This document shows positions 26,001-64,000 of a stretch of DNA of 64,000 nt, in pieces (positions within the stretch are counted from its first letter, which is position 1; every line of letters begins with the position of its first letter). A program made the translations under genes and the position numbers. This DNA is from Oculina patagonica (lineage: Eukaryota). The DNA is taken from positions 7,998,001 to 8,062,000 of the forward strand of contig NC_135761.1 of the NCBI RefSeq assembly GCF_052425735.1, written 5' to 3'. The notes beneath the pieces are model-generated. The model searched no databases. It was not told the DNA's origin and saw nothing but the letters and a program-made list of their open reading frames with translations.

Positions 26001-29000
26001 AGGTACAATTCTCACTCGGGGATAGCTAGCATAAATCTGTTCAGTTAGCTAGGTGGTGTGAAAGAGATCACTGTTAACATTTTACCTTTACATTATCAGG
26101 TTAATGATGGCCGTGGTACATTTTCGTTTGACAAGAAAGTCATTCTTCAGTTATTTCAAGACTCTTTTCAGTATGAAAAAGATGCAACAGTCCTTTATAG
26201 CTATGCTCACATTAAACTGGAGGTTAATGCCACGTTTCACGAGGACCTTACAGGCAAAGTAGCTAGTGGCCAAGGAAGTGTTTCATTTTACCAGATGGAT
26301 GTCAAGTTGCAATTTGCAGAATTTAATCCTAAAAACTTCAAACCAGGATTACCTTTCAAGGTTTTGGTGAGTGAGTTTGGTTATATTGCTATTTTAGCCA
26401 TTCACAGGCGAGTGATTAAAACTGTCATTGGATGTTAAGAATGCAGTAGAGCATTTTATTCATGCTCAGATGTTTGGCACATAGGGCTCTTAATATTTAA
26501 TTTTCTGAGTCAAGAAAGAAAGAGGGGGGAGTAGAGGGGTTGGCTATTTTGAAGGTGGGTGCACATGTATTTGAATGGGGGCACTTATTTCATTTTTTTC
26601 ATATTTCAACCTCAATATAACAGTCTATGTTTCAAATATCTCATACTGCTTTAACATAAGATAGCAAAACACATTTTTCAGTAGAAGCACATGCCCTCAA
26701 TCTTTATTTCACAAAGAAGTATTTGTACCAAATGTTCATTGTACTGTGTATTCAGTGCATGTAATTCATTCTTTGTTGAGAGACAGGACAGGTGGGAGCA
26801 CTTAATACAGGTTTTAGAAGGGGGGGGGGGGAGACACTTATTTAATTTTTAGCCTGGGAAGTCAAATTGCAAGGAGGGCACATTTTTATGCTGCATGGAC
26901 ACTAAATTGAGTGTTGTTATTGAAAGGCATAGTTACTGTACTTCTTTCTTCTAGCTTCAAGTTGTCCAACCAAATGGTGAACCAGTCAGTCCAGATAGAC
27001 TGAAAAAACTGCAGGGTAATGTCAAAATTACAACAAAGTACGACTGGAAGGGTGACGGCACTGATGAATTTTTACCTCATTCTGATGACGGAAGCTTCAT
27101 TATCACCAAGGACATCCCTTCATCTGCGCAATACTTAAGTCTACAGGTTCGTTTGGTAAACTTTGTATTTATTAACTTATAACAAGGATCTACAAATGCA
27201 CACTAGTAATATATAATATTATGTGCGTACAAGTTTGTGATGTCCATTTGATTAAATATAACTAATTTTTTAAGGCAGTGTGGACACATAACCAACAGTT
27301 GAATTTGTCAACCCTCCTCAAAAGTGTTGTGGTTTTATTTAAATGCTTTTCATGGGTAAACGTATATACATGTAGGATTGACATCCTGTTTCCTTTCTAT
27401 GATGGCTTTTTTTTCCTTTTCCATCATCTTAAATACCATATTTATTCGATTAAGCGCCCAACCTCGAATAAGCGCCCACCTCGAATAAGCGCCCATCCTG
27501 TAGGTAGGAAAAGTTAATAAGCGCCCAGCCTCGAATAAGCGCCCACCCCCACCCCTTAGAAAATTGACATGAACAAGAGGAGTAAAATGAGAGGAGTGAA
27601 ATTGACTTAGAACTACCAAGAGACTACCCAGAAGAGCAAGCTTTCTCAAGAATTTACAGAACCTTTCAAGGATCAGTAAAAAATTCGGCTTTTGGACATC
27701 TTCACGTTCTGTTATTATTTACTTTTTTCCTGCAAAATAAGCGACTACTTGCTAAAAATGGTGAAAATTTAATAAGCGCCCAGCCTCGAATTAGCGCCCA
27801 CCTCGAATAAGCGCCCACTCTCAAGGTCCAAAAATTTAATAAGCGCCCAGGGCGCTTAAACGAATAAATACGGTAAATGACTAAGTATGCTAGCGCTGTG
27901 CCTGATTTTCCCAATTTGGTCTTTCTAAGAAATGTAACAAGGTGAAAAACCCAAGAACTGTAGATTTCAATGCTGCATATTTTTAATTAGCATTTTTAAA
28001 TTGTTGTAATTTTGTTGTTGTTGTTTGCAGGCAGAGTATTCAGAGGGTCTGAGACAAGTAATGGCCTATTTTTCTGCTTCTAAATCAGAATCGCCAAGCA
28101 ATTCGTTCTTGCAGCTATCCACTACCACATCTTCAGTTAAGGTAATAATTTATCATTGATTAATAAATCCTTGACTTCATTGTACTGAGTAATACATTTA
28201 CCGGTATGTATAATGTACAATAATGTACAAAGTCAGGCAAGTCAACCTTGTAAGATTGGCGAAGTTGATTTGTAAAATTATATGTTTATGTTACAGGTCA
28301 AATTTAAATGCAGGTTAAATTTTTTTAGCCTAGGTTATTTTTTTCAACCAAGGTAAAATTTACAATAAAAATTTACGATAAGACATTCGCTAAAAACATT
28401 ATAAACTCTGTTTAATTTTTTTTTAAAAAAGACGCGACATTTCGACGTTGACTTAACGTCATTATCAAGCAAAGAGAATATGTGATAAAATGTATAAATA
28501 CTAAAAATAGACAATGGAGATTAAAATTAATAAAAGTTGTGAAGTAAAAATGTTCAATGTCAAACAAAGAGTTTAGCACGTATGGAGTCCGCCTGCATAT
28601 TCAAATTTGGTCGCAGTTTCTTTATAAATAGCATCTCGTAAATGTTAACTAAAATATTACTGCTATTCAATTGAGCGAATCTACAAAGAAAATGTATTAT
28701 TTGTATCCTTGGTCTGTGAATTCATAACTAATAATCAGATTCTAACTATGCTATTTATACAATCACTAACATTTTCTTATGTTTAAAAAATGTAAGCTGC
28801 AGTTGGATAACAGTCTTTTCACACACAAGGTGTCAGCTACTTTTATTTACGTTAATGACAAATTTTCTCAAAATCACTTGTGAAACGTCATCGCTTCTGC
28901 ATGCATTGCGTGTCATTTATTTTTACAATGCAGTTGATTGTTAAGTAAATATATTTTTGTACTTAGCACATTGTTTTAGAACGTGTTGTATCTTTCTGTT

Positions 29001-32000
29001 CAGGCTGGTGATAATATTGCTTTGGATGTGGAAGCCACCTTCACACTCTCAGAGTTAAAATACATGGTATGCTCACTGTTCTATTAACAGTAGTTGATTA
29101 GAAGTAATTTAATGAGTGAATCAATTTATAATGCAAAGCTATGGCAAAACTATTAAAGCTATCTGAAATTTGGCAAAAATTAATGAAAAGTGGCAAGTTA
29201 ATAAATTTATTCTATTTTTGTTTTTGTTTTGTGATTAGGTGGTGGCACGTGGAATGTCAGCAGAAACAGGCACACATGTTGTATCTCCTGGCTCCACCAA
29301 AACTTCATTCACTATCCCGTCAAAGCCAGGCATGGCTCCCACTGCTCGCTTGTTGGTCTACAGCATGTTGCAAGGTGGTGAGATTGTGGTGGACTCTCTG
29401 AATGTTAAAATAGAAGACCCTTTTCAAAATCAAGTAAGGATCTAAGTGTATATGTCTTTTGTATTTATTTGACATAATTTCATCCCATTTTGAAACACCA
29501 AGAAGAGAGTTGAAAGTTTATGATGCACTGTGGATTAGTTTTGATATACTACTAGGTGTTTGAAGTAATATATCAAACATGAGAGACAGTCTTTCATTGG
29601 GATATCCAAACACCAAGAAGAAAGTTGAAAATACCACATGCAGCAGAGTATTTTTGACGAAATTCGGGGTATTTGGAAATCAATGTCTGTTGGTTTTTAT
29701 TCTCAAAAAAATCTATGCTAATTAAGACCAGGTATCCAAACCTCCTTCATGGTTACGATTTCCTTTGTTTTAACTTGATGAATTGTTAATGAGTTTGAGA
29801 AAGTGCATTATGACACACTCTCGTGTGTGTTTAATATTAATTATTGCCTCAATTCAAACTAAGGAGTAGATGTAAATGGAGAAATACAATTTACATGTTG
29901 AACCTACGGTATTATGACCAGACCAACATCGTTGTTTAATAATAATTATAATTAATAGTACAGACCAATGAACTCCATTTGGCACTATACATACTGTGTT
30001 GCTTGCAGTTCTGTCTTGTATAGGATTTTCAGTGGGGCTGTACATTATACACAGCCTTGACTTTGTAAATTCTACTTCAGGTTTCAGTGACCATTGACAC
30101 AAATAACAAAGATAGTGTCTCTCCCGGTGATACAGTGACCATCAAAGGCAAAGCGACACCAGGATCTTTTATGGCCTTCCGAGCAGTGGACAAGAGTGTG
30201 CTTCTTATGAAAGAAGATACTGATCTCTCTGTTAGAAAGGTAATTAATTTAATTTATATGGAGCCAATAACTGCAAGAGGCTGTAGATGTGTTTTCTATA
30301 ATACTGAGCAGCGAAATTTAAGTTTGAAAATAGCACCGTCAAGGCTTGTCAAATGGTTTAGAAGAATAATTTTTTCTCACACCGTTAAGCATTTATTTTC
30401 AGACTTGCATTAAAGGAGAAGTACTCGAAACTCCTTGTTTTTTTGTATTTCTTGGAGCTCTGTTTGAGCAAAATAGAGATGCACAAACAGGCATTTTGAC
30501 AAACAAAAGCCACTACGAAGAAATAAAGGAGTTTCGAGTATTTAAATTTTCCCGCCAAACTTCAGGCTGAGCTCTTTGAGGTCATGCATACATTACCAGC
30601 TCCAAGATGGTGGTGTTCAGTTATCGAGTTTTGAGAAAGATTTTGTAGGGTTATAGCGCATGTTGGAGGCTAAAATTTTGGTGAATAACATGTCTTTGTT
30701 TAAACGTTTTATTGGCGTAAAGAAAATAAATGGCCCTTCTGGACCGGAGTGAACCTCTCCTTTTAGTTTTTTTCATCTTTGATCATTAGCAGTTCTAGCT
30801 GATTAGATCCTATACACTGGGCTGTGTTCAAATCCTTCTCACTGTCATTAGATGGAAAAGGATTTGTTTGGTGGTTCGGAATTCACTTTTTTCATGCTCT
30901 AATTTCTTCAGTTAAAGGATCCAGTCCTTCCATTTTGCCAAGATGAACCTGGCAAATTGTTGTTAACTTTCTTTTTCAAATTTAAGTTTGCAATGTTTTT
31001 GTTTAGGTTCTTGAAGATCTTCAAAGTTATGATTCTGCCCAAACATGGTATCCATTTTGGGAGTGGGGCATCAGGCGGAGCCGTCGAATGATTATGCCTT
31101 TTCCAACTTCGGGACGCAGTGCAGCTAGAATCTTTGAGGTATGTGCATCTAATTAGAAGTTAATTCATTGCTCTAAAAACATATTTAAACTAAGTTTGAT
31201 TTCTTGATATCAAATGGAAGGAGAAAGCAAATGTTCCTCATTAATATTGATCTGTCTTGGAAACTGGAGATGAACCTTAAAATTCCATGTTAATGGTCCT
31301 CAATTTTCTGATAGAATAATAATCTGGCATACCTTATTATAGGAAATTAATGATACATGTTATTAACGCAAATTTCAAAAATTCGCGTTAATTTTATTGA
31401 TGTTAATTAATATAAACACGTTTACCATAAGCATTTAACCAGAACTTTTCTTAAATTCGTGGTAATTCTATCATGCGTCAATTTTGTTCGCGTTGTTAAA
31501 ATGCCTCGTTATATTCCTATAATAAGGTATATATGACCATCTGAATTGCATGCTGTTCATTGCTGGACCATCTGTGCCCTTAATATGCATTGCGTGCCTA
31601 TAAAAAGAAATCCAAGACATAGGCTTCTATCTCTTGGCCTTTCGGCCAGCTCTCAATTAGCAGCTAGACGGCAATCAAACTAAGTGAAGTATTATCTGAA
31701 GTGTGGCAAGTTTAACATAATTTGTTTTGGCAAATCTTTATTGCCAGTTTGTTGTTTTTGATTCTTGTTTCATACACATTTTCCAAGTTTAGTGGCTTAT
31801 AGCCACTTTGATTTACCACTTTAATTTTGACCCATTTCATATTTTTACTTCATAGAACTCTGGTGTTATTGTGATAACTAACTACAACTTGCCAGGAGGC
31901 TATGATGACTATATGATCATGTATGGTAGACGTCCAGTCATGGAAGGTTGGTGCAGTTGAATAAAATGCTTCATTACTAAGACATCTTTTGTAAATAATG

Positions 32001-35000
32001 TATTTTTAAAAAGAAATGTAGGCACATAAATTGACAGATTGTTTAAATCCGCAGCGTCAAATTCATTTCCATTTGGGTAGTTTCCAAGTTGCCTTTGGCC
32101 TCTGTTTCAAACTGTTTCACAGGAAGACTCGTTCTGCCTCAGAGGCAAAAGGCAACTCAGAAACGGGCTATTACCATGGGCTGTGGCGACAAAACAAGAA
32201 AGCAAGGTCTACATTTATAGAGGTTAAAATGCAGTAAAGAAAAAAATGATAGAACAGTTTATAAAGTTCATCTCAGGATCACAGCCAATCATATAAGTAA
32301 AAAAGTTGTTTATTATAAGAAAGATTATAAAAAATAAAAATCATATTAGGACAGACATTGTTGATGGACGTAAGGATTGCTTAGTTCCTTGCCCCAGGGT
32401 GGGGGATAGGGCCGGAGGACGTAAGGAATGCTGCGATTTATGAAAGTTCTACAATCTTCAGATGAACGTGAAAAGTCTCTGAAACAAAAAGAAAGTATAT
32501 AAATGTGATGGGAGCGTTTTCAGTTTACATACTTACTAAACCTCCTTTGTGTCTCTTGCCTTAAGCCCTGACCAAGGAGCAACGCAAGTAGACGCAAGAT
32601 GAAAACTTGCGTCTACTTGCGTCTCCGTTTGGCCAGGACTTGCGTGCACTTAAACTGAATTGCGTTCACTTTAGTCGAGATCAAATTTGCACTTAAGTTT
32701 TTCACCGTTTGGCCACCCAATGCAAGTCAAGGCATTTTTTCCAGTTTACTTCAAATACTAAATTGCACCTCGCAGCATTTTAAATGGCTTTTTGCAAACT
32801 TGCTTGCACTTGCGACTAAACTTGCCTGTTTGTTTGGCCAGCCAATGCAAGTCTGTATGCAAGTTCACCTTGTGATTACTTGCGTTCACTTGCGTTACCG
32901 TTTGGCCAGGGCTTAACCTGAGCAGTGTGATGTCCAATGATGATTTATTTTGTTGCTACTGTATGATAGCAGAAGCAGATGATTCAGACACGTTGGGAGG
33001 CAGTGTTGGCGGTGGAAAGCCAGAACTGGCTGAAGTAAAGCGTGTCAGAAGTTTATTCCCTGAAACATGGATTTGGTTGGAATATGATGCAAGGTAGGGA
33101 ACTTTATACTTCAGGGTTGCCACGGTCAGGGAATAACAAAAAATTTTTAACGTTAGGGAATTTTGCAAAAAGTTAGGGAAAATCTAAGCTCTTGTCGAAG
33201 TCAGTGAAAAGTCAGGGAATTCAAATGCCACTGATGCGTTCAAAACCTTGTAAAAAACGTAAAGAGATCGAAAATGAAGAGAAGACTATCGATGGTCTGG
33301 AGAAGAAGCTGAAGCAAATGTAAAAGTGGCTTTGGCTTTGCTTATTTTAAGGTCAGGGGGGAAAAGTCAGGGGATTTTTTTGGTTCTAATGAGTGGCAAC
33401 TCTGTAACGGGTTAGGGACACAAACGTACCCCTCTCGGACAAAAAAGTGGGTTGCTCCAAAGGAATAATCATCATATTCCAACCAGTTTTACGTTTCAGG
33501 GAATAAACTTCTGACACGCTTTACCTCAGCCCGATGTGGCTTTCCACCCGGCGCCGGCATTTTTTTAACTGGATCAATGAATCAGCTGCGCTATCATACA
33601 ATAACGAAATAAACCATTATTATATGCCATACTTTCTGACATAGTGATACGCAACACAAAAAAAGTTTTGCAATCATAAGATTAACATGAAAATGCGCTG
33701 AAACAAAAAGAAAGGATATGGATGTGATGGGAAGCGTTTTCAGTTTTCCATACTTATGTGAGCCTCCTTTGTGTTATTGGCTGACCTGACCAGCGTGACA
33801 ATGATTTATTTTGTTGTTATTGCATGATAGCAGGAGCAGGTGGTGGTGTAGATATGAGAGAAAAATCTAGCGGCGGTGGAAAGCCTGAACTGGCTGAAGT
33901 AAAGCGTGTCAGAAGTTTGTTCCCTGAAACATGGATCTGGTTGGAATATGATGCCAGGTAGAGTACTGAAAGAGGGAAATGGGGGAAATGTGGTAGGTGA
34001 AACATTCCCCTCTGGGACAACCCAATTGCAGGTTTAATCATGGGCTGCACCAAACGAATAATCATCACATTTCAACCAGATCCACGTTTCAGGGAATGAA
34101 CTTCTGAATCTGGCTGAGCTCCTGCTATCATACAATAACAACAATATAATCCATCAATGTCAAACTTTCTGATATAATGATATGCTATGCAAAAAAGTTC
34201 TACAATCGTCAGATGAACATGAAAAGTCGCTGAAACAAAAAGAAAGGATGTGGATGCGATTGGGAGCATGTTCAGTTTTCCATACTTACTGGGGCTTCCT
34301 TTGTGTCTCTTGCGTTACATGACCACCATGACATTGTCGTTTTTGTATGATAGCAGAAAGAGCTGATTCAGAGATCCAATTTAAGAGTGCCGGCGGTGGA
34401 AAACCAAAACTGGCTGAGGTAAAGCGTGTCAGAAGTTTATTCCCTGAAACATGGATTTGGTTGGAATACGATGCCAGGTAGGAAACTTACTTTAGCGGAT
34501 AAGGAATAGAAACTTACCCCTCTCGGACAAAAAACATGGGTTGCTCCAAAGAAATAATCATCATATTCCAACCAGATCAACGTTTCAGGGAATAAACTTC
34601 TGACACGCTTTACCTCAGCCACTTCTGGCTTTCCACCGCTGGCATTGCTCACTGGATTTCTGAATCAGCTACGCTATCATACAATAACAACAAAATAATC
34701 CATCAATGTCAAACTTTCTGATATAATGATATGCTATGCAAAAAAGTTCTACAATCGTCAGATGAACATGAAAAGTCGCTAAAACAAAAAGAAAGGATGT
34801 GGATGCGATTGGGAGCATGTTCAGTTTTCCATACTTACTGGACCTCTTTTGTGTCTCTTGCGTTACCTAACCGGCACGACAAAGATGATTTATTTTGTTG
34901 CTATTGCATGGCAAGCAGCAGCTGTTCCAGGCCTCCGAAATAGGGCCGGCGGTGGAAAGCCAAAACTGGCTGAAGTAAAGCGTGTCAGAAGTTTATTCCC

Positions 35001-38000
35001 TGAAACATGGATCTGGTTGGAGTATGATGCCAGGTAGGGAACGTACGTTAACGCATTAGGGACACTAACGTACCCCTGTCGGAAAAAAACATGGGTTGCT
35101 TCAAAGGAATAATCATCTTTTTCCAACCAGATCCACGTTTCAGGGAATAAACTTTTGACGCGCTTTACCTTGGCCAGTTGTGGCTTTCCACTCAGCGCCG
35201 GCATTACTCAACTGGATCTCTGAATCAGCTGCTCTTTCTCCTCTGCAGGCTACTCCATTTAAGCCTTAATATTGGGTATCCTGTGTAGCAGAGGGGAAGA
35301 GAGAAAACTGGGACTTGTAGAGAGGAAGACTGGGGATGTAAAATGTAAAAATGTAAATGTAAATGTTGTTTATAGTGGTCATGCACTTAGCTTCATATCT
35401 CAACGAGATAGCTAGTTTACAGGCATGCCACTGAAACAGAGGAAACAAATATTTTAAATGAAAATAACAAGGTTAAAAATCCCAACTGGCAGGAGGCAGA
35501 CCAGTTGGCTATGTACAAAGCGTGATCGAGGATTTGAGCTCGGGACAACCGAGAAACAAATCCAGCTAGTGGCAAGGGCAGGTGGTCCCAGTCTTTCTTC
35601 CGTAACAAAGGGAGTTGCCTGCTGAAGAGGGTACAGCTGCGCTATCATACAATAACAACAAAATAAACCATCAATGTCTAACTTTCTGACAAAATGATAT
35701 GCAATGCAAAAAAGGTCCTTCAATTAGTAGGTGAACATGAAAAGTCGCTGAAACAAAAAATCAAACAAAAGGATATGGATGCAATTGGGAGCATGTTCAT
35801 TTTACCATTCTTACTTGGCTTCCTTACCTGGGCTGACCAGCGTGACATTGATGGGTTATTTTGTCGTTATTGTATGATAGCAGGAGCTGCTGATTCAGAT
35901 GTAAGAATAGCCAGTGCTGATGGTGGTGGTGCAAAGCCTAAACTGGCTGAAGTAAAGCGTGTCAGAAGTTTATTCCCCGAAACATGGATCTGGTTGGAAT
36001 ATGATGCCAGGTAGGGTACATTCAGTAAAGAGGGTCCAAATGGAAGAAACGGGGTAGGGACACAAACTTACCCCTCTCGGACAATCCCATTGGAGGTTCA
36101 ATCATGGGTTGCACCAGAAGAAAAATTCTACACTCTGCAGTAAGAATTTGTTACTTGGTACTGAAGGTGTGTCAGGTATGCTGACCCAGTGATACGTGCA
36201 TCACCCTTTGGATCAAGCAGTCCGAGTTCAAGCCCCGGCCGGGATCATTGTAATGTGCTTTTGGACAAGACACATTCCTCTCTCAGTGCCTCTCACCACC
36301 CAGTTGATTAAATGATTACTGGTGTGTTAGAGGAAGCCTAAAAAATGGTGGGGGTGCTGCGATGGGCTAGCATCCCATCCAGGGGAGAAACAATACTCCT
36401 GGTCACTTTATGATTCTAAGTCTTAAATTATGCGCCGGCCTGGCAGTCAAGGGCTTAACCTCCTGGAAAAAGTTGGGCAATCCTATCCTGGGCTCAACTC
36501 TGGGCTGCACAGGAAAAATGATTTTCCTACACTCAATCTTCACAAAGACGTGCTCTCAATACTTTTATTTAAAAAAATACAGAAGTGAGTAGTCACTGCT
36601 AGGGATAAACAGGTTGAAAATTTAAAACTTGCTTAAAATTCCAGCAAACAGTCAGTGTTTCTGATGTTGTCAGTTCTGCAGGGGAGGTTGAATTCCAGAG
36701 GGCTGTCCCTGACACACTGACTACTTGGGTAGCCAGTGCTTTTGCTGTGTCAAACTCTACAGGGCTGGGTGTTGGAGAACTTAAACCTCAGGTAGGTCTC
36801 GTATGCATAGCACAGTATACAGGAAAGCAAGAAACGTTCACAAAAAAAGTCAAAGAGGTGGTTTGAAAATATACTTCTTGACTGGGTTAGCTCAAGGCGG
36901 ACGGGATCATAATTATTTGGCTGTCTCGTACGCCATGACCTGACCCAAATATTTTCGCGTACAACTAACACAGCGACGAGGAGCTTTATGGCTCAGTTGA
37001 TAGAGTATCCCACAAAGGTCCTGGCTTCAAATCCCATTACAGCCTCGAAATTGTTTTCAGGCTTCATTGCTTGCAAGGACAACTACGAGGACCATTTGTT
37101 AATTACAATTAAGTCTTTAATTTTGTGGCCTTCAGGTTCAAGTGTTCCAGTCCTTCTTTGTGTCACTCAACCTTCCATACTCTGTTGTTCGTGGTGAAGA
37201 GGTCGCTCTGCAAGTCACGGTCTTCAATTACGAGTCTGAGGCGCAGCTAGTGAGTATGCGTTGTTGACAGCCAAATATATACCGGTACCCAACAAACGTC
37301 TCCGTGAACTTAGTAGCGCGATCTGTTGGCGCAACCTGACGAAATACTAGGAAGTTACTTGCAATACTCCCGGCCTATTGAATCCCTATAAAAAGAGGGT
37401 TTGATTTCTTTAGTAATGTGTAGGCTTATTCAAGCCAAGGTGTGTTTTCCCAGATACTTTCGTTCTTGCCCGTTCTTTCTGGTGTTTTGAATGTGAATAT
37501 TACCCGATGATAAAGCTATCAAAATCGCTAATTTCTTGATAGGCAGTACAAAAAAGGACTGCTCAACCCTTAATTTGAGGTTGGAGTGCTCACTCATTAT
37601 TTCAACTTTTAGGATATAGCAAGAAGTCATTGCAGTGCAGCTGAAACGTCCACCAAACGGCCTACAGTGGGCTTTTTTTTGGCTACAGTCAATCATACTT
37701 GCGACGTCAATTTTCTAAAAACTGATTGGAGGTGTTACCCTTGTGACGCCATTCTGTAATATTTGGTTGCTTAGGTAACCAGGAAAATCGGCATTTAAAA
37801 GCCAGCTATTAGTAGGCGGTTGAATTTCTCAGTCCGTGCGTATTGCAAAACTTTAAAGCTGATTTCCAGTCCGTACTGCGCAGACTCGGGGTTTGTTTTC
37901 GTTTTTGTTTTGAATTCGTTGAAACGTTACACTTCGGTGACAGCATACATGACGTTTTTTAGTCCGCCATTACGGTTCGTTTCGTTCAAGAGTTTCCGAT

Positions 38001-41000
38001 GAGCTGAAACGTCGGTTTGAAATAGCGTCAAGGTTCTTCTACTCTTTATTATTTGTTCTGCAAGGATATCTGGCGTTAATAATGAAGAAAAAGGTAAGTT
38101 TGTCGCGGAATTTTTAGTTTTGCTTGTAAACATTCCCTTCGAGTGGGCTCACATAAACATTGCAGCCGAGATTGCGCAGTACGGACTGGAATTCATCTTT
38201 AAGTTCGGACGTATTTCAAAACTCTGTAAACAGATCGAATGTTTGGTTGCTTAATAGGTAACCAGGGAAAATGGCATTTAAAAAGCCAACTATGGGTAGG
38301 CGGTTGAATTTCTCTGAAACACAGGTTCCCTGCATGAGCATTCTGTCAATGAGCAAACTATTGTTGCTTGTTGTCAAGGTAACCATTACACTGAAAGGAT
38401 CCAAAGACTGGGCCATCATTGATGAGGTCAACAAACTTGGGCTAAGAGGCGAGAATTCCGTAAACAAAGATTATGTGGACAAAGAAATGGACCTTAAAGT
38501 CGAGATAACTGTGGGAGCTGGTCAAGGAAAAGCCGTGTCTTTCCCTGTGGTCCCTAGAACTTTAGGCCTCGTGCCAATTGAAGTGCGAGCTCAGTCCTCG
38601 AGGAGCGCTGATGCTGTCAAGAGAAACTTGCTGGTGGAGGTAAATATTGATTAATTAGAATGAACATTTTTGTCATAAGTGTAGTAGCCTCCTACACTGA
38701 AGTTCTTTTGGCTTGTCACGCAATCCAGCGATGAGGGAAGAAAGGATTGCGTGACGAGCCGAAAAAAAACATCTGTGTGATAGGCTATAAATGTAGTAAA
38801 CACCGTGAAACTCACCACTTTAAAGTTGACTGTTGGAAGGATTTGGCGTAAACACAAAGCCAATGCGGGAGAAAGCGTGTGAAAAAATTGGTGACACAGA
38901 AAAAAAAAGAGATGGGAGGGGGCGCTGGTTTTTAAGAGACTGTTACCCTTCCCACCAGATATATTTCTTTTGCTTCATTATCTGATTGGTTTATTACACT
39001 CTTGCTGTTACACTGAAAGGTAACAACGTTGGTTCTTGTCTTATCACTTTCAAGAGGAAAGTGGTGAGAGAACGTTCTTTATGTAGAGACACTTTACTCA
39101 CACAGCTTTGACTTAAATATATTTATTGTATTTTTTTCTTAGCCCGAAGGAGTTCCACAGGAATACTCCATCAGTATGTTGTTGGATCTTAATTCAAGTA
39201 AGCAAAAACTGTTACCATTTTAGTTCTAGTGTCGATTTTAGTAAATTATTGCTTAGCAACCTCTAACTTTCTAACAAAAATCGCGAGCTCAGTCATTTCT
39301 CAGAGACATCAGACTAGAAATGGTCTTTATCACTTCTGCTGCATAGATCCAGAACTCAGCCGGTATAAGTTCAAATTTTTCACGAAATTGTTCACTTAAC
39401 ATGCTTTACAGAGAATTTTATTTTGACCGTGTTATTCAAATACTTTTTTGAATTTTTATTTCTTTTTATCGTGTATTAAAAGCAATTTTTTATAAAAAAA
39501 AAAATTTTTCTATTAAGATTAGGCGCTTAGTGTGCAAGAGTAAAACCTAGAAAATAATTAGTGAGAGATGAAAAAAAAATTCCAACAATTTAACTGGTAA
39601 ATTTCTATCAGAATGTTTGCCTTTGTTCTCACAACCTTGGTTAGTCTTCAATCTCACCGTGACTAACCGTTGTGTGACCTTGTTGCAGCCTCAAGCCTGT
39701 CACACACAGTGGCTCTTAGTGTGCCACCAAACACTGTCAAGGGATCTGCGCGAGCGACAGTGTCAGTGATGGGTATGTTTCATTTCAGAAGACGAAGTGT
39801 TCAACATGAGTAATTATTTTGTTCACAATCATTGCTAGCAAACAGTTTTCAATTTAGCAGTTTGAAAATGCCAGCTCTTTCTCAATGTTCAGTACAAATT
39901 GTAGCTTATGTGTAGCTGTACCCACCCCCCCCCCCACCCCGAGGTAAAACGGACAGGTGGGGGGGGCGTGGTACGGCTACACGTAGGCTATACAGTTTGA
40001 TGACTTGCTCTTATATTACTGGCAAACGATTTTTTTGGTTAATTATTCTCTACGGGTGATTTTTCGTGATCTCAACTTGCTTGGGAGTAGGTGGAGTAGC
40101 TTGGTTGTTAAAGCACGCGACGGCTGGGAACTGGACACCAAAAAACGTATTCTGTTTCGTCATTGAGTCATTACATGTAAGACCACCCTGGATATCGATA
40201 GCGTCTCATTTCTCTAACTGAATTAATAACTCTTTCTCTTTATGCGGAGGCGTAGTTATCCTCGATTGAGGGATGCCTATACGAGTTGAACTGTTGTAGA
40301 TTTTATAACATTTTTGACTCGTACGTTTTCAATCGCCCCTGGTACCAGCTCTGTGTTTGATACAATCTCATTAACAAATAAAGCCATCGCTCAACGCGTA
40401 ACGCTTTCAACGCGAGCTGCCTCTGTGATTTGTATGACCCATTTGTCTTGATTGTTAGGTGACATTCTTGGTTCTTCCATAAACAACCTGGATCAGTTAG
40501 TGCGCATGCCCTATGGCTGTGGAGAGCAGAACATGGTGAACTTCGCTCCGAACATCTACGTCATGAAATACTTGAAGACTGTTAACCAGCTGACTCAGAG
40601 TATCCAAAACAAAGCCAAAAACTTCATGATCGCAGGTCAGTGATATTGAGTTTGTCAGTGCCTATTAGACCTGTATTGATCCGGCCGTGATATTGTGAAC
40701 AGGGCCTTACGGTTTTCAGACCAGGTTGAACTGTTCTTGAACTATTCACTTTTTCATCCGTGTGCCCTCCCCCCTCCCCAGGGATATTTGAGTCAACACA
40801 AATCTACAACCCCTGACAAAAGTGTTGGGAACTTTTGCACTTCTGTTCCTCCCCTACCCTCCTCCATTCAATGTTGAGCGAAAAGCACACACATGATTGT
40901 AAAGTAAGAAACCAACATTGATAAGAGGGAACGGGGCGATATTAGAGAAGTACAGTAATGGGGGGTGGCTACATTGAATTCGAAACTGTCTTTAATAGGG

Positions 41001-44000
41001 CATGTTTTGAGAACCATCCCAACTATTTTTGACTGGGATTGTAGAATGTTCCCTGTTCTTGTTTTGTTTCCCTCCACGAACTTATTTTCTCTTGCATGGC
41101 TTGGTACCGAGCCTAATTAAATCTAGCATGTGAAGTTTAAGTAAAGAACAGTGGATTAAAAAAACTAATTTTAGTAGTGTGAGATGGAGGGGAAATAAGT
41201 CGATCCCGTACTGTTGGGGTGAAGTGGTGGGGTTATGACCTGAAGGGGAATCGAAATAGGTTCGAGTTAGCGGGAGGTTTGAGTTACTGAGGGTTCGAGT
41301 TATCGGGATTCAAGTGTATTCAATTCTTGGTTACATGATGCATTCTGTATGCGTCAGAATTCTGTGCAGTTCGGGGTTGTGTTTGAGTAACCTTAGGTTA
41401 AGTTTTTCCTTTGATAATATCTCAATTCCTTTACAGGTTATCAACGTGAACAGACCTATCGCCACAAGGAAGGTTCTTACAGCGCTTTTGGTGAACGTGA
41501 TGGGACTGGAAGCATGTGGTAAGAACTGGACCGTAGTGTTAACCCTGCGCCCCAATATCCACACAAAAATTTTCCTGACTGATCGCCATACATTTTCTTG
41601 TAGTATTAGTTGGGAGATTTTTGTTAATGTCGTAAAACCAAAACCAAAGTAATCACTCTAGTCAATCACAAACAACATAGACAGTCCAGTAAACCAATCA
41701 AAACTCATAGGAAATACATGTAGCTGGCACGAAGTGCGGGAAAATGTGCACAATGTTGGAAAGCGAGAGCCAAGCAATTTCCCTTTGGTGATCATTTTAT
41801 AAATTCTCTTAAGCCTTTCTCGGTCTTGATTAAGAACTGTTATTGTGAGGAGAAATGTGATGTTGGTCACTTTTAAGACTTGAAGGGATAAGGAACTGCA
41901 GACTGCAGTCAGACGCTTTAACACCTACAACAGAATAACTTTTATGGAAATTTGTTTGCGTTCAGTGGCTAGTTTGGAACTTTCCATTTACTTGGAGCGG
42001 TTTCTTGTCTCTTCGTAGGCTGACTGCGTTTGTTGCGAAATCGTTCGCACAAGCACGAGCATTCATTCCCGAATACATAGACGACAAGTTGCTAGAGGAA
42101 AGCCTTGCATGGATGGCTCGTCAAACTAACAGAGATGGATCCATCAAAAAAGTTGGCCAGGTTCACAGCAGTGTGCTGAAGGTACGCTACTTACTACCGC
42201 TAATTTGTTTTCTTCGATTTAAAGAATACATTATCCAGGTTGGTCGATATACGGAAGTTGTCTTCCATTCCTGTTGCAAGACTTTAACATCTTACAGACA
42301 GACAGACAGACGACAGACAGACAGACAGAAGAAGAAGAAGAGGGGGCGGGCGCGGGGAGACAGACAGACAGACAGACACTTTATACAGAATTCATAAAGG
42401 TTGCACTTATTTACAATGCAGCAGAGCTGTGCGTCTAAAATTAATTTATTCAAGTTAATCTAAAATAATTTAAAACAGTATAATTAAAATAGTAATACTT
42501 ATTCCAAGCAGGCTATAAAGTATGTAGTACGGTTCTTTTTTCTTCTTCTTAGAATTTAAGTGTAAATATTTTAACTTTAAATAGCTTAGATATATAATAA
42601 TGTAAATAGTGTCCACAGTTTTCAGACACTTTAATAAAGTATTTCAATTTCAAATTTCAAGACATCTTGCCAGTGTAGTAAACGTCTGTTTCTTTGTGTT
42701 TTAGGGCGGTCAGACGGGTGTTATTTCTCTTACCGCATATGTGCTCATTGCTTTGGCTGAAGCGAACTCCAAGTCTCGGGTAAGATGTGGTGGAATTGGT
42801 GGGTGTAGGGGCAGAAACAAAAAGAGGAAGAAGAATACGCGAACGTGTCACCAGCAATCAACAAAGTTATGATATCTTGTTATAGAATAATGCATAAATA
42901 TCCACTTATTCAAGAAGTTCGTTGTATAAGGCACAAAACAGATGTTCCTTTTTATTTTCAACCGAATTACTAAGTCTGCATTTAAAATTAAAGTGCGACA
43001 GACGTGGCTGTTAAGTGCTATAAATCTGAAAAGAAACCTTGGAAATGTTTGAGTAGGGTCATGTAGAAATGGCTGTGTGTATAAAAGCTAGTGACAATCT
43101 AAAGGTTATCTAAAACTCTGTATATCTTATGTCAGAAGCTTGTTGGGGCACAAAATGTATATCAGAAGCTTTGCTGTGCAAGCCATATACAAGAAAGCTA
43201 TCGATTCGTTATTTTTTACACGGTTACATTTGTTTGCATTGCAGGCTGTCATTAATGCCAAGAATAACGCAATAACTTTCCTGGAAAACAAGGTTAACGC
43301 GATGTCGAGTGATATAAAAGACTCCTACACCTTAGCTATCACTGCGTACGTATTGTCTTTGGTTGGAAGTGCTAAGAAGACAAAAGCCCTTACAGAACTG
43401 CGTAAAATGGCTATTGAAAAAGGTTAGGCTAAAATATGAGGGGATGTTACTACAGAATAGCAATGGTTAATGATGACGTTTTCGTTGTTGTAACCTTGCT
43501 TTGCTTTAAAGCATTCGCGGGAAAATTCTCGTTTAAGCAACAGATATTGGTATGGCTCTGTATTCTTGCTTTAGCTAGAATTGTGCTTGTGCTCATCAAG
43601 TATTCGCACCTTTGCAACGAGAAGAAAGCTGGGGCGAGTCTTATCTCGTAGTGGCTTGTGGGACCGTTGCTGGGGACAATTTGGCTACATCAGTATCGGA
43701 CCCACAAACAAGGGGAGATGCACCCCAGATTTCTCGTTTCTGAAGAGGGGAGTGTTAAAGGCGTTGTATAGACCTCTGAGTCAGGGAAGCGTGGTGACCT
43801 AAAGTGTTTAGTTAGTGCACTTGATCCCGGATTGAGCGGTCTGGGTTCAAGCCTTAGCCGGTCACTGTGATGTGTTCTTGGGCAAGACACTTTACTCTTA
43901 TAGTGCCTCCCTTCACTTAGGTGTATAAATGTGTACTTGCGATTTTAATGCTGGCGGGTAGCTCTGCGATGGACTAGCATCTCATCCAGAGGAAGTAGAA

Positions 44001-47000: not shown

Positions 47001-48798
47001 GATCCATCTCTGAAACTCAAGCGCGTGGAGTCTCCAGATCGCAAAGTGCTTTTCTACTTTGACGAGGTAATCATTTGCATCCGTGTTTTAATTTCAGTCA
47101 AGAATCCAGTAATCCTTACTCAGGCCCTGCTTGTTGTAATGGTTGGATAACACTATCCACCTAATAAATCACTATCCAATGGATTAATAGTTGGCGAAAT
47201 CAACAACGGTGTCCGCTGGATAGCGTTATACATCATTTCAACGACTGGGTACCAGCTAACTGCTGTCGGGAAACGCCGCAAAATTCCCCGTGGAGACGTG
47301 TGGGATGGAGGTAGGAGGGCTGGCTTGAATCCTGCGTTAGACTCTCTTCCTATTCAGGGGGGTAAAATGAAATATCTAGGGAGCGGGCTGAATAAATCCA
47401 GAGGGTTGCACTCAAACTATTCTAAACACCCCGTTTGTAAAGGCCAGGCCAGACGTGCCGTCGTTTCTTACGAGAAAACTGTGAGGCAGCTTGGGGACGA
47501 GACAGGCAAAAAAAAAAAAACAGGCCTTGGAGCCAAGAACTATACATTTGAAAATGAGTTAGTTTCTTATTATGTCTAAATTTGTCGCGGGGGGGGGGGG
47601 GGGTGTCATTAACAAATGTTAAATGTGGTTTTCAGATCCCATCAAGTCGGATGGTATGCGTCACAGTGACGTTTCAACGTGCTTATGACGTAGGCAAACC
47701 TCAACCTTCCTCGGCATCCGTGTACAGTTACTACGAACCAGGTAAAATAAGCTGACACTTCATTTTCTTACGATTAAGAGTTTGTTTGAGACAGGGTTTG
47801 TATCGGCCCTGGAAACGCTGGTAAGTCTTGCATTCCGGCACTCCAGTATTCTCTAGGATTGGGAAGATCTGGAAAATGCGTGATTTATTTGCTTGCCCAA
47901 GAAAGTTCTGGAGACGGTAAAATCGAGTGGAAAACTGAAGTGACTCAGAAAAACTGCCCGTCTCGAAACAAACTAACGAGGATTTTGCTAAAGTCACTAG
48001 TAATTTTCAGAGGGCTCTGCTTTTCTGATTGCGCATTTTAAAAGAACCGAACCTTCGGTTATTTCAACGAGGATTTGTGCAATAAAGTCACTGCTTAATC
48101 CAAGCCAGTCGTAAAAGTCATAAGAAACCTTAACATAGTAGTGCAATACGACAGAGCGCAAGAGACGCGGTAGCCTAATAGTTTGTGCGCAGGACTCCGG
48201 ATCGAACGGTCCTGGTTCGGGCCCTGGCAGGGTTCACTGTGTCGTGTTTTTGGGCAAGACACTTTACTCTCATAGTGCTTCTCTCCACCCAGGTGTATAA
48301 ATGGGTACTGGCAAATTTACTGCTGGGGGGCACGATAGACTAGTATCCAATCCATGTAGAAGTAGAAATATTCCTAGTCGCTTCATGCTGCGGAAACCGG
48401 CCTGATCGGCGACTAGGCTCAAACGCAGACTTTACCTTAACCTTAAAGGTAGAAAAGCAACAAAGAGCTAATTATAAACCAAAAAGGAGCAGGCATGATT
48501 AAAATTTGGGAAGACAGAGATTATGAATGACAAACTAAATTTTAAAAAGTGCACCACCCGTCTCGTTTAACTGATCGTTCGTTCCTTTGCTGTAGGAAAC
48601 CGTGCCGCTGCCCTGTATGCCGTGGACTCACTTGCAGATCAAGGCGTTTGTCGTGTCTGCCCCGATTGCGTCAACTGCGAAGTAAGGGACGAGCCCACAG
48701 GGCAACCAAAAAAGAGCTCGGCACCAGGATTGATGGCTGCGATTGGCAGCGGGGGAATGGCGCTACTGTCGCTGATGTTGTTGGTTGCATTGAAGTGA
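11025..48798 (+). CDS. CD109: CD109-like / iTEP thioester-containing protein (A2M superfamily), 37 coding exons, predicted GPI-anchored
   Basis: Exons: 11025-11083, 13820-13983, 14584-14609, 16024-16183, 16674-16726, 17292-17309, 17504-17555, 17753-17829, 17922-17961, 24078-24162, 25307-25403, 26100-26366, 26955-27146, 28031-28141, 29004-29066, 29239-29433, 30081-30239, 31007-31138, 31856-31946, [one of five cassettes in 32970-36010], 36674-36791, 37136-37249, 38379-38639, 39143-39197, 39689-39772, 40459-40635, 41437-41518, 42019-42181, 42705-42779, 43245-43422, 44192-44406, 44963-45121, 46106-46168, 46596-46796, 46992-47066, 47636-47741, 48596-48798. All junctions are GT-AG and phase-compatible. 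Motifs: signal peptide, [92 protein letters not shown], CxxCxxCxxC, hydrophobic C-tail. Strict CD109 orthology is untested. Confidence 0.93.
11410..12051. mobile_element. Harbinger-like non-autonomous element, same family as 7385-8783, opposite orientation
   Basis: ggccctgttagg...ccctaacagggcc termini; internal ctcctgctctgtgtac repeats are the reverse complement of those in 7385-8783. Confidence 0.6.
12395..12879. mobile_element. Tc1/mariner-type MITE
   Basis: TA-ccgtatttacttgaataagcgcc...ggcgcatattcaagtaaatacgg-TA, with internal aataagcgccg repeats. Confidence 0.8.
18555..22332 (-). CDS. LINE ORF2: APE endonuclease + reverse transcriptase + CCHC, split by one 43-nt frameshifting duplication at ~20462-20504
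   Basis: APE motifs LNVRG, LQET, NVYAP, GGDWN, SRIDY, DH. RT motifs [38 protein letters not shown]-terminal CTYC...H...C. Confidence 0.92.
22814..23715 (-). CDS. LINE ORF1 (coiled coil + RRM-like, L1/Transposase_22 type)
   Basis: Heptad coiled coil followed by [33 protein letters not shown]. First ATG at ~23715. Confidence 0.88.
25648..25840 (-). mobile_element. 5'-truncated RTE-clade LINE 3' fragment
   Basis: [18 protein letters not shown]...ARDRHVWR; 13-bp TSD aaatagttattaa at 25635-25647 and 25841-25853. Confidence 0.85.
27434..27875. mobile_element. Tc1/mariner-type MITE
   Basis: TA-ccatatttattcgattaagcgcc...ggcgcttaaacgaataaatacgg-TA, with internal gaataagcgccca repeats. Confidence 0.8.
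28431..28640 (-). mobile_element. Penelope-like retroelement 3' remnant
   Basis: Minus strand reads [26 protein letters not shown], the E..I....P.LN.Q tail of a GIY-YIG domain, followed by pLTR-like cttgataatgacgtt...aacgtcgaaa. Confidence 0.7.
32563..32914. mobile_element. MITE inserted upstream of bait exon A
   Basis: ttaa-gccctg...cagggc-ttaa termini with internal gcaagt/acttgc repeats; interrupts the conserved array spacer. Confidence 0.75.
32970..33093 (+). CDS. TEP alternative bait exon 20A
   Basis: gatag|cag...gcaag|gtaggg; 124 nt, phase 1->2; [41 protein letters not shown]. Confidence 0.85.
33112..33404. mobile_element. hAT-like MITE in the linker after exon A
   Basis: TIR cagggttgccac...gtggcaactctg; absent from the other linkers. 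No clear TSD. Confidence 0.6.
33470..33616 (-). repeat. Inverted non-coding copy 1 of bait exon plus its 3' splice region
   Basis: Reverse complement reads ttattgtatgatag|...[25 protein letters not shown]; in-frame stop and no donor. Confidence 0.9.
33831..33957 (+). CDS. TEP alternative bait exon 20B
   Basis: gatag|cag...gccag|gtagag; 127 nt, phase 1->2; [42 protein letters not shown]. Confidence 0.85.
34063..34162 (-). repeat. Inverted non-coding copy 2 (internally deleted)
   Basis: Keeps the antisense of the acceptor region (cctgctatcatacaataacaac) and of the FPETWIW end; the middle is deleted. Confidence 0.88.
34354..34477 (+). CDS. TEP alternative bait exon 20C
   Basis: gatag|cag...gccag|gtagga; 124 nt, phase 1->2; [41 protein letters not shown]. 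Confidence 0.85.
34559..34711 (-). repeat. Inverted non-coding copy 3
   Basis: Reverse complement gives [30 protein letters not shown], out of frame with its own acceptor and lacking a donor. Confidence 0.9.
34919..35033 (+). CDS. TEP alternative bait exon 20D
   Basis: Tandem acceptors aag|cag|cag (34916/34919/34922, all in frame)...gccag|gtaggg; [38 protein letters not shown]. Confidence 0.83.
35114..35679 (-). repeat. Inverted non-coding copy 4, split by a ~400-bp insertion
   Basis: 35114-35232 is antisense to the exon body ([26 protein letters not shown]); 35634-35679 is antisense to the acceptor region. Confidence 0.88.
35233..35633. mobile_element. Non-autonomous insertion inside inverted copy 4
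   Basis: Direct repeat cagctgc at 35226-35232 and 35634-35640; imperfect TIR ctcctctgcaggctactcc / ggagttgcctgctgaagag. Confidence 0.7.
35881..36010 (+). CDS. TEP alternative bait exon 20E
   Basis: gatag|cag...gccag|gtaggg; 130 nt, phase 1->2; [43 protein letters not shown]. Confidence 0.85.
36170..36410 (+). mobile_element. tRNA-derived SINE (degenerate)
   Basis: B-box-like gagttcaagcc plus core ttggacaagacac...ctcagtgcctctc shared with the copies at 43785 and 48160. Confidence 0.7.
37856..38200. mobile_element. MITE lying between ~70-bp direct repeats (37762-37830 / 38243-38313)
   Basis: TIR aaagctgatttccagtccgtactgcgca...tgcgcagtacggactggaattcatcttt. Confidence 0.65.
42295..42378. repeat. 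Interrupted (GACA)n microsatellite
   Basis: acagacagacag runs on both sides of a short G/A-rich insert. Confidence 0.85.
43785..44091 (+). mobile_element. tRNA-derived SINE
   Basis: A/B-box-like head (gtggtgacct...gggttcaagcc), core gtgttcttgggcaagacactttactc, tail agactttaccttacc. Confidence 0.8.
44515..44780. repeat. Degenerate ~29-bp tandem repeat (ttttcccgcgcttg); second array at ~49900-50035
   Basis: Repeated ttttcccgcgctt...ggttacatg units. Confidence 0.7.
45162..45709. mobile_element. Tc1/mariner-type MITE
   Basis: TA-cagtcaactctctc...gagagagttgactg-TA, with internal taagacggacacct repeats. Confidence 0.85.
48160..48445 (+). mobile_element. tRNA-derived SINE
   Basis: gcggtagcctaa...ggttcgggccc head, same core and agactttaccttaacc tail as the copy at 43785. 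Confidence 0.8.
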
Positions 48799-63751: not shown

Positions 63752-64000
63752 GTCAGACAATTTCGTACTTGCTTTCTTTACCCTGTGTGCACATTCAGTT
63801 TTCAAATGTTTTTTCTTCGTAGTGTCATTAAAAGCTTGAAAATTATGCACCCTTTCCTCAGAAGCCTTCTATTCCCACTGTAGACCATTTATCCTATTGC
63901 AAATTGTATATGCACAGGCACATTTCGAGATTATTTAGAATACAAGGCTTTCTGTATTTTACAAAGGGTCCACTTAGCCTATGTTTACACGAGACCGTTT

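Follow-up and report, generated by a model that had tools for sequence, protein, structure and literature searches.

The stretch of DNA analysed here, hereafter the window, comprises 64,000 nucleotides (nt) of the stony coral Oculina patagonica (contig NC_135761.1, positions 7,998,001 to 8,062,000; all positions below are counted from its first letter) and carries a gene for a thioester-containing protein in which five similar exons, here called cassettes, lie in tandem between two constitutive exons. Pfam domains follow each other on open frames of the + strand in the order A2M_BRD (30069), A2M (36674), TED (40452, 41939 and 43999) and A2M_recep (46572), and an Atlas search with the thioester-domain exon confirmed the family. 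Compared with solved structures, the thioester exon matched human CD109 best (1.2e-20), followed by A2M (8.9e-18), then A2ML1 and mosquito TEP1 (1.5e-10), with C3 and C4 as the weakest matches (~1e-4); the ranking of CD109, A2M and TEP1 is that of this single exon. The downstream constitutive exon aligns to residues 745–782 of A2M and 729–757 of CD109 in their solved structures, and CD109 chains are the sole solved proteins that match the constant strand of the cassettes (residues 705–719, PDB 8s3o and 9fx2). The upstream exon alone gave only a chance match to solved structures, and a protein search with the exon at 26049–26435 returned fragments but no full-length homologue. Cysteine is absent, in all isoforms, from the roughly 45 residues between ..VITN and FPETW; this stretch hence holds no anaphylatoxin domain, and the gene is not a C3.

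To judge from the domain order, the intact GCGEQ motif and the absent anaphylatoxin domain, the gene is a thioester-containing protein of the A2M/CD109/iTEP branch; it appears most similar to CD109/A2M, with human CD109 as the best relative of solved structure. The C-terminus looks like a glycosylphosphatidylinositol (GPI) signal, as in CD109, and the protein is probably GPI-anchored. In the protein, the cassettes fall precisely in the interval from where the bait-region domain ends to position 10 of the A2M profile, and they therefore encode the end of the bait or hypervariable linker together with the start of the next macroglobulin domain. A first-pass annotation, made from the letters of the window, had already proposed a CD109/iTEP-type gene with bait-region cassettes, in agreement with the Pfam order and with the CD109 705–719 match of the constant part. 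Its suggestion of a non-bilaterian host fits the coral origin, to which a DNA run with the label "coral metagenome" and about half of the sequence words of the array also points, as does an exon-collinear locus described below.

Five Tandem Cassettes Locked in Frame

The cassettes (Table 1) are tandem homologous exons of matching phase and similar length, as is characteristic of mutually exclusive exon clusters, and their array has a compact footprint of ~3 kb. Reading of the sequence from 31700 to 36900, together with scripted checks, found an AG acceptor, a GT donor and a length of 3n+1 in every cassette, and in each of them the only open frame is the one that continues the upstream exon. 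With cassettes of this length between flanking exons of phases 1 and 2, messengers that contain none or several of them meet an early stop. Full enumeration of the 32 ordered cassette subsets left just five open, all of them single inclusions, as the first-pass annotation had argued when it called single inclusion effectively enforced by the frame. Inclusion of zero or at least two cassettes leads to a stop within a few codons: when all five are skipped it is met 15 codons into the downstream exon, and when four are combined the length is restored, yet a stop occurs inside the second cassette. Such messengers would be expected to undergo nonsense-mediated decay or to yield truncated protein, which would leave five isoforms only. 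Steric hindrance and U12-type sites were considered as causes of exclusivity and rejected, given that the introns between cassettes measure 396–847 nt and all donors are ordinary GTAGG or GTAGA.

At the peptide level, the last 27 residues of the cassettes vary at two positions only (E/K and G/A), and the first 9–13 residues are wholly different among the five. This is the near-invariant 3′ part with differing 5′ peptides of the first-pass annotation, whose coordinates, lengths, peptides, GT-AG sites and phases were all found to be correct on re-reading.

All cassettes have a tandem acceptor of the form NAG/CAG (TAG/CAG, for example, at 32967–32972, and AAG/CAG/CAG in cassette 4 at 34914–34921). 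A shift of the acceptor by 3 nt is possible and would, from the letters, gain or lose one alanine with the frame kept; in the joint observed for cassette 5, the upstream one of the two tandem sites is used.

Table 1. Positions of exons, cassettes, antisense copies and other elements of the thioester-containing protein gene in the window.
Feature	Position	Strand	Description
Exon with end of bait-region domain	30069..30244	+	A2M_BRD profile positions 98-140 of 140; collinear with locus L021 at 83% identity
Constitutive upstream exon	31856..31946	+	91 nt with phase-1 end; exon 19 in the numbering of the first-pass annotation; joined to cassettes in RNA contigs, which end at 31946
Cassette 1	32970..33093	+	124 nt; own variable peptide; no spliced junction seen in RNA contigs
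Antisense copy a1	33470..33625	-	cassette and acceptor region; pseudo-exon containing a stop
Cassette 2	33831..33957	+	127 nt; donor 33957 joined to 36674 in run X1
Antisense copy a2	34063..34165	-	shortened by internal deletion, about half of its length lost
Cassette 3	34354..34477	+	124 nt; donor 34477 joined to 36674 in run X4
Antisense copy a3	34559..34715	-	predicted hairpin with cassette 3 at -204 kcal/mol
Cassette 4	34919..35033	+	115 nt; variable peptide AVPGLRNRA; joint 31946/7 to 34917 in run X4
Antisense copy a4, exon-body part	35114..35239	-	from repeat search and alignment
Repeat insertion splitting a4	35240..35633		~394 nt; RNA-contig depth of thousands in each of the four runs
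Antisense copy a4, acceptor-complement part	35634..35678	-	95% complementary to cassette 5 acceptor region 35844-35881
Cassette 5	35881..36010	+	130 nt; joined from 31946 in runs X1, X3 and X4; followed by no antisense copy
Constitutive downstream exon	36674..36791	+	needs phase 2 (two carried-over bases); exon 21 in the numbering of the first-pass annotation; starts at Pfam A2M profile position 10
Next constitutive exon	37136..37251	+	joint 36791 to 37136 in three runs
Open frame with thioester exon	40452..40640	+	..PYGCGEQNM.., GCGEQ motif intact
Last coding open frame	48571..48795	+	small residues, then hydrophobic tail at the end; read by eye

Splicing of the Cassettes in RNA Contigs

Contigs of four sequencing runs from four studies were aligned to positions 31500–37400; the runs were chosen among those that hold 10–18% of the window's words, about its exonic share. 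The gene is expressed in three of the four, and the contigs there carry GT..AG joints that skip introns, so that these runs behave as RNA. The upstream donor is joined to cassette 5 in all three expressing runs and to cassette 4 in one, and the donors of cassettes 2 and 3 are each joined to the downstream constitutive exon in one run (Table 1). Altogether, the splice boundaries at 31946, 35881, 33957, 34477, 36674, 36791 and 37136 are backed by RNA contigs, and no joint from one cassette to another is listed among the contigs of the four runs. The first-pass annotation had claimed five alternatively used exons, and this stands for cassettes 2, 3, 4 and 5, which are spliced in the expected manner, but not for cassette 1, of which the contigs give no junction; one contig of 227 nt runs from the intron across its acceptor in unspliced form. 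A ranking of cassette use from contig depth was discarded, as depth is given per contig and is unfit for this purpose.

The RNA contigs also differ from the reference within cassette 5. Its first codons (35881–35890) lack 3 nt in X1 and X3 and read as another string of 7 nt in X4, and a difference at position 35920 changes Asp to Gly. These differences between studies suggest allelic diversity in the bait peptide itself. Three intronic stretches (35240–35633, 36228–36424 and 32288–32900) reach contig depths of hundreds to thousands in all four runs, including the one that does not express the gene, and are probably abundant or transcribed repeats. One of them splits a4, and another, which carries tandem "ttgcgt" motifs (32600–32914), is located just upstream of cassette 1.

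Intronic Antisense Copies and a Proposed History of the Array

A repeat search revealed that the introns after cassettes 1–4 each carry an inverted cassette copy, including the polypyrimidine tract and the acceptor (a1 to a4, Table 1). In an alignment of the five cassettes with the reverse complements of the four copies, the latter share derived changes, namely the end ..GATGATTATT at the place of the exons' donor and one common A-to-G change, so that a single inverted duplication is their common source. In the variable part they are similar to cassette 3, which is thus, on this likeness, the closest to the ancestral form kept in the copies. The array as a whole consists of one unit of spacer, exon and linker, followed by four units of antisense copy, spacer, exon and linker, and the repeat units are 78–99% identical to each other. 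As the antisense copy forms the junction between units, the presence of five exons with four copies is automatic and needs no selective explanation. In the history that we propose, one ancestral bait exon would have been tandemly duplicated, recently and in this lineage, and the first duplication would have left an inverted copy of exon and acceptor at the unit junction. Later unequal crossovers would have amplified that unit to five exons and four antisense pseudo-exons, and after duplication the 5′ parts would have diversified fast while the 3′ parts were held constant.

Units of such high identity are the kind of repeat that assemblers mishandle, and the array might in principle be an artefact in which alleles or haplotypes were stacked in tandem. 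We consider this extremely improbable: RNA of three studies shows splicing of four cassettes, each with its own variable part, to common flanking exons, DNA-like runs of two further studies hold over half of the words of the array, and the variable parts differ far more than alleles would.

Selection on Constant and Variable Parts

The antisense pseudo-copies were used as non-coding controls of the same age as the cassettes. Over the 27 constant codons we counted 11 synonymous and 3 nonsynonymous changes among the cassettes, as compared with 8 and 27 plus one stop among the antisense copies (Fisher p = 0.0007), and the constant 3′ parts of all five cassettes are hence under purifying selection. 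The constant part of cassette 1 itself has 2 synonymous changes and 1 nonsynonymous change. Mostly synonymous change in the constant parts indicates that every cassette, cassette 1 included, has been kept translatable.

These counts bear on a different view of the array, in which only some cassettes are functional and the others, cassette 1 above all, are recent duplicates on their way to pseudo-exons, with splicing that represents noise. The array is indeed young, the contigs yielded no junction for cassette 1, and a repeat of ~360 nt is located between the acceptor of this cassette and its upstream unit sequence. However, all five cassettes retain AG and GT sites, an open frame and a 3n+1 length in spite of indels, four of them have junction support, and their constant parts changed mostly at synonymous sites where pseudo-copies of the same age have accumulated stops, deletions and the 27 nonsynonymous changes. 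We therefore give this view a small chance.

The variable part behaves in the opposite way, with a pairwise identity of 0.58 among cassettes vs. 0.82 among antisense copies: as coding sequence, the variable part has evolved more rapidly than in its non-coding counterparts. A comparable pattern was seen in two types of single-cassette metagenome scaffolds with Tara-style names (L003 and L006), whose flanks (both introns and the constant part) are 96–97% identical but whose variable part is identical at only 14 of 23 positions and contains a 12-nt indel, so that the same hotspot appears in a single-cassette lineage.

Distribution Among Genomes and Coral Loci

Similar cassettes were sought as open frames on contigs of other assemblies and of metagenomes, and the respective loci were then fetched. 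Within the window's own genome of 529 Mb, the cassette sequence is confined to this locus. The closest locus, L021, is collinear with the window exon by exon at 80–94% identity, with introns that cannot be aligned, and has a single cassette between both flanking exons and no antisense copy. The same holds for ten further loci with usable flanks, each with one cassette and no antisense copy (11 with L021). The array is young and lineage-specific, being absent from the other coral loci read; neither this nor the antisense copies figure in the first-pass annotation. DNA-like runs from two studies, one of them labelled "coral metagenome," hold 53–59% of the words of the array.

Two metagenome scaffolds from one sample with a Tara-style name carry different cassettes (L022:1558-1692, ..NADSGVPEIARAGGG..; L023:285-437, ..AADSDVRERAGGG..) and are 88% identical over 897 nt. 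They are too diverged for alleles, and another coral may thus own a bait-exon array of wider spacing, although the scaffolds are too short to decide whether they represent two units of one array. In the scaffolds L003–L009, which stem from several metagenome samples that also bear Tara-style names, the ortholog occupies much less space than in the window: the bait-region domain lies in one open frame of 243 residues, and the distance from cassette to receptor domain is ~9 kb vs. ~12 kb in the window.

Five Probably Mutually Exclusive Bait Exons

The explanation that we favor, at a probability of roughly 80%, is that the stony coral has a CD109-like thioester-containing protein, probably GPI-anchored, whose cassettes form a recent tandem array of five mutually exclusive exons. 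Each cassette would contribute the 9–13 residues at the center of a bait or hypervariable linker sensitive to proteases, as well as the invariant strand with which the next macroglobulin domain opens, and these short peptides suggest that the isoforms may differ in protease or target specificity. The first-pass annotation had proposed that different proteases would trigger the isoforms, with acidic, basic (Arg/Lys) or hydrophobic (Phe/Leu/Met) P1 sites. Several points weigh against this explanation. The RNA nature of the runs was guessed, though the GT..AG joints argue for it, and cassette 1 has no junction in the contigs of the four runs. The contigs break inside the shared constant part, with the consequence that no molecule spans both sides of any cassette, and they drop rare forms, so double inclusion may go undetected. 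Finally, there is uncertainty in how the variable parts align, and the difference in rates could be inflated if the antisense copies underwent gene conversion.

Could the Antisense Copies Act in Splicing or Editing?

Each antisense copy is able to pair with each cassette, with 82–93% complementarity over 78–90 nt or more and duplex energies of -99 to -209 kcal/mol, and the duplexes begin ~40 nt ahead of the acceptor and stop 3 nt short of the donor. The hairpin of cassette 3 with a3 is far more stable than its shuffles (-204 vs. -91 kcal/mol; z = -23), and when the entire cluster of 3.2 kb is folded at minimum energy, an antisense copy pairs with each of cassettes 1–4, leaving cassette 5 free. 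An exon and its 3′ splice site are thus held in a stable stem with intron sequence, as expected for exon masking, in silico only. In terms of these models, the antisense copies must matter physically to naked RNA.

The copies might accordingly be a working part of the switch, each of them hiding the polypyrimidine tract, 3′ splice site and body of either neighboring exon, so that four maskers would leave a single one of the five exons accessible, and RNA structure would then add to the frame in enforcing, and perhaps biasing, the choice. All copy-cassette pairs are strongly complementary and predicted to form stable duplexes, the hairpin of cassette 3 with a3 is also very stable, and cassette 5, alone unpaired in the predicted fold, is also the only one with junctions in all three expressing runs. 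A system of docking site and selectors of the Dscam type, which would be the alternative, is absent: comparing the flanking introns with the five unit spacers gave only matches of 7–10 nt at chance level. Yet the number of N-1 copies follows automatically from their place at unit junctions, and there is no detectable constraint on them. Their pairwise divergence of 12% in the constant part is about that of other intron segments of the unit (78–99% identical) and of synonymous sites in the cassettes, and conservation beyond neutrality was found in none of the repeat, divergence and substitution comparisons. Copy a2 has lost about half of its length and a4 is split by an insertion of 394 nt, none of the copies matches its adjacent exon better than the other exons, and cassettes 2, 3 and 4 are spliced despite an adjoining antisense copy. 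Other coral loci read contain neither array nor copies and hence offer no cross-species conservation for comparison. A role of the copies in the switch is thus a tentative idea, with the odds against it.

A particular form of such control, which we regard as rather unlikely, is a chain with one hole, in which N-1 copies pair either to the left or to the right; this gives N perfect pairings, each of which leaves one unmasked, spliceable exon, and would be a new means of ensuring that one exon is chosen. Such a chain would fit the predicted fold, in which cassette 5 alone is free, and the cassette 5 junctions in all three expressing runs. Such a device would arise in one step, through tandem duplication with an inverted junction, and would then be tuned by indels in single maskers.

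The copies could alternatively be editing-complementary sequences whose duplexes recruit ADAR, with adenosine-to-inosine (A-to-I) recoding adding diversity beyond the five isoforms. ADAR recoding sites use duplexes between an exon and the downstream intron, and the geometry found here fits them. In all four copies a C stands opposite the A of an ACA threonine codon, and A>G differences occur in cassettes at 34403, 34407, 34989 and 35920. However, in this comparison of RNA runs with the reference, made without DNA of the same individuals, A>G shows no enrichment over T>C or G>A, and differences of this kind are also present in constitutive exons. The difference at 35920 amounts to 100% in two runs and 0% in the third, as a polymorphism would give, and the one at 34403 recreates the base of other cassettes, which makes cross-mapping likely. 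Editing as the function of the copies is, in our view, very unlikely.

Other Features of the Window

An intronic microsatellite at 42223–42455 lies among the thioester-domain exons and would give DRQT repeats in two reading frames. Downstream of the thioester-containing protein gene, at 59159–63836 on the + strand, lie open frames of a second gene of coiled-coil type (e.g., ..EDFKTYKPLLSAIKHEYEMMLVHQREKIRELEPLK..).

Comparison With Known Systems

For the diversification of innate immune recognition in invertebrates, the switching of bait exons in thioester proteins is a classic means, documented so far in arthropods and molluscs, and a young array in a stony coral indicates that the same solution arises repeatedly and quickly. 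For coral immunology the locus represents a concrete and assayable source of recognition diversity, for example under Vibrio challenge or heat. Its intronic pseudo-copies provide a rare neutral yardstick of the same age, against which the bait outpaces non-coding DNA while the adjoining strand stays constant. Owing to its antisense copies, the locus is also a natural test case of whether one duplication event can create, ready-made, a control of mutually exclusive splicing by RNA structure. In the literature searched, we found no report of a cnidarian thioester protein with bait-exon switching, for which a prior mention is possible, and none of intronic antisense exon copies in a mutually exclusive bait-exon cluster.

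Human CD109 gives the best match to the thioester exon (E = 1e-20) and shares with the coral gene the strand at residues 705–719. The human protein is GPI-anchored, and the C-terminus of the coral protein looks like a GPI signal; to our knowledge, human CD109 has just one bait region, with no alternative exons for it.

A stem that represses splicing has been reported for exon 6B of the chicken beta-tropomyosin gene, where the exon and its splice signals are sequestered with intron sequence. Stems of this type are short and conserved, in contrast to the coral duplexes of 100–160 nt, which come from an inverted duplication and are repeated four times. With regard to origin, a proposed model holds that competing pairings in mutually exclusive clusters are generated when an exon is tandemly duplicated along with one or both stem-loop arms (Ivanov and Pervouchine 2018, PMC6071210). 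As in that model and in clusters of the Dscam exon 6 type, duplication at the coral locus would yield competing RNA pairings, but there is no single docking site, the element is itself an exon copy that is predicted to mask rather than to activate, and N-1 such elements are interleaved with N exons.

Among bait-exon clusters, the most similar ones are those of the snail Biomphalaria glabrata, in which BgTEP2 has 12 mutually exclusive exons over 30 kb, BgCD109 has eight predicted variants of which four were found, and BgA2M also has alternative bait exons (PMC7016707). The peptides of the snail exons have a conserved C-terminal and a variable N-terminal part (PMC7016707), just as the coral cassettes do. 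The snail array differs in belonging to a mollusc, in being larger and older than the young, ~3 kb coral array, and in that no intronic antisense exon copies are reported for it. Five bait-exon isoforms are given for Drosophila Tep2 and six mutually exclusive exons with seven isoforms for Chlamys farreri CfTEP (PMC7016707), and bait splice variants are described for tick A2M and shrimp A2M-2 (PMC12939704, PMC7016707). All of these share with the coral gene the position in the protein and the principle of one gene with several baits, one per messenger, but all are from protostomes, whereas the present array is found in a stony coral. The choice among bait exons is in itself already known from arthropods and molluscs, and what this locus adds is the coral array, its young origin and the antisense copies.

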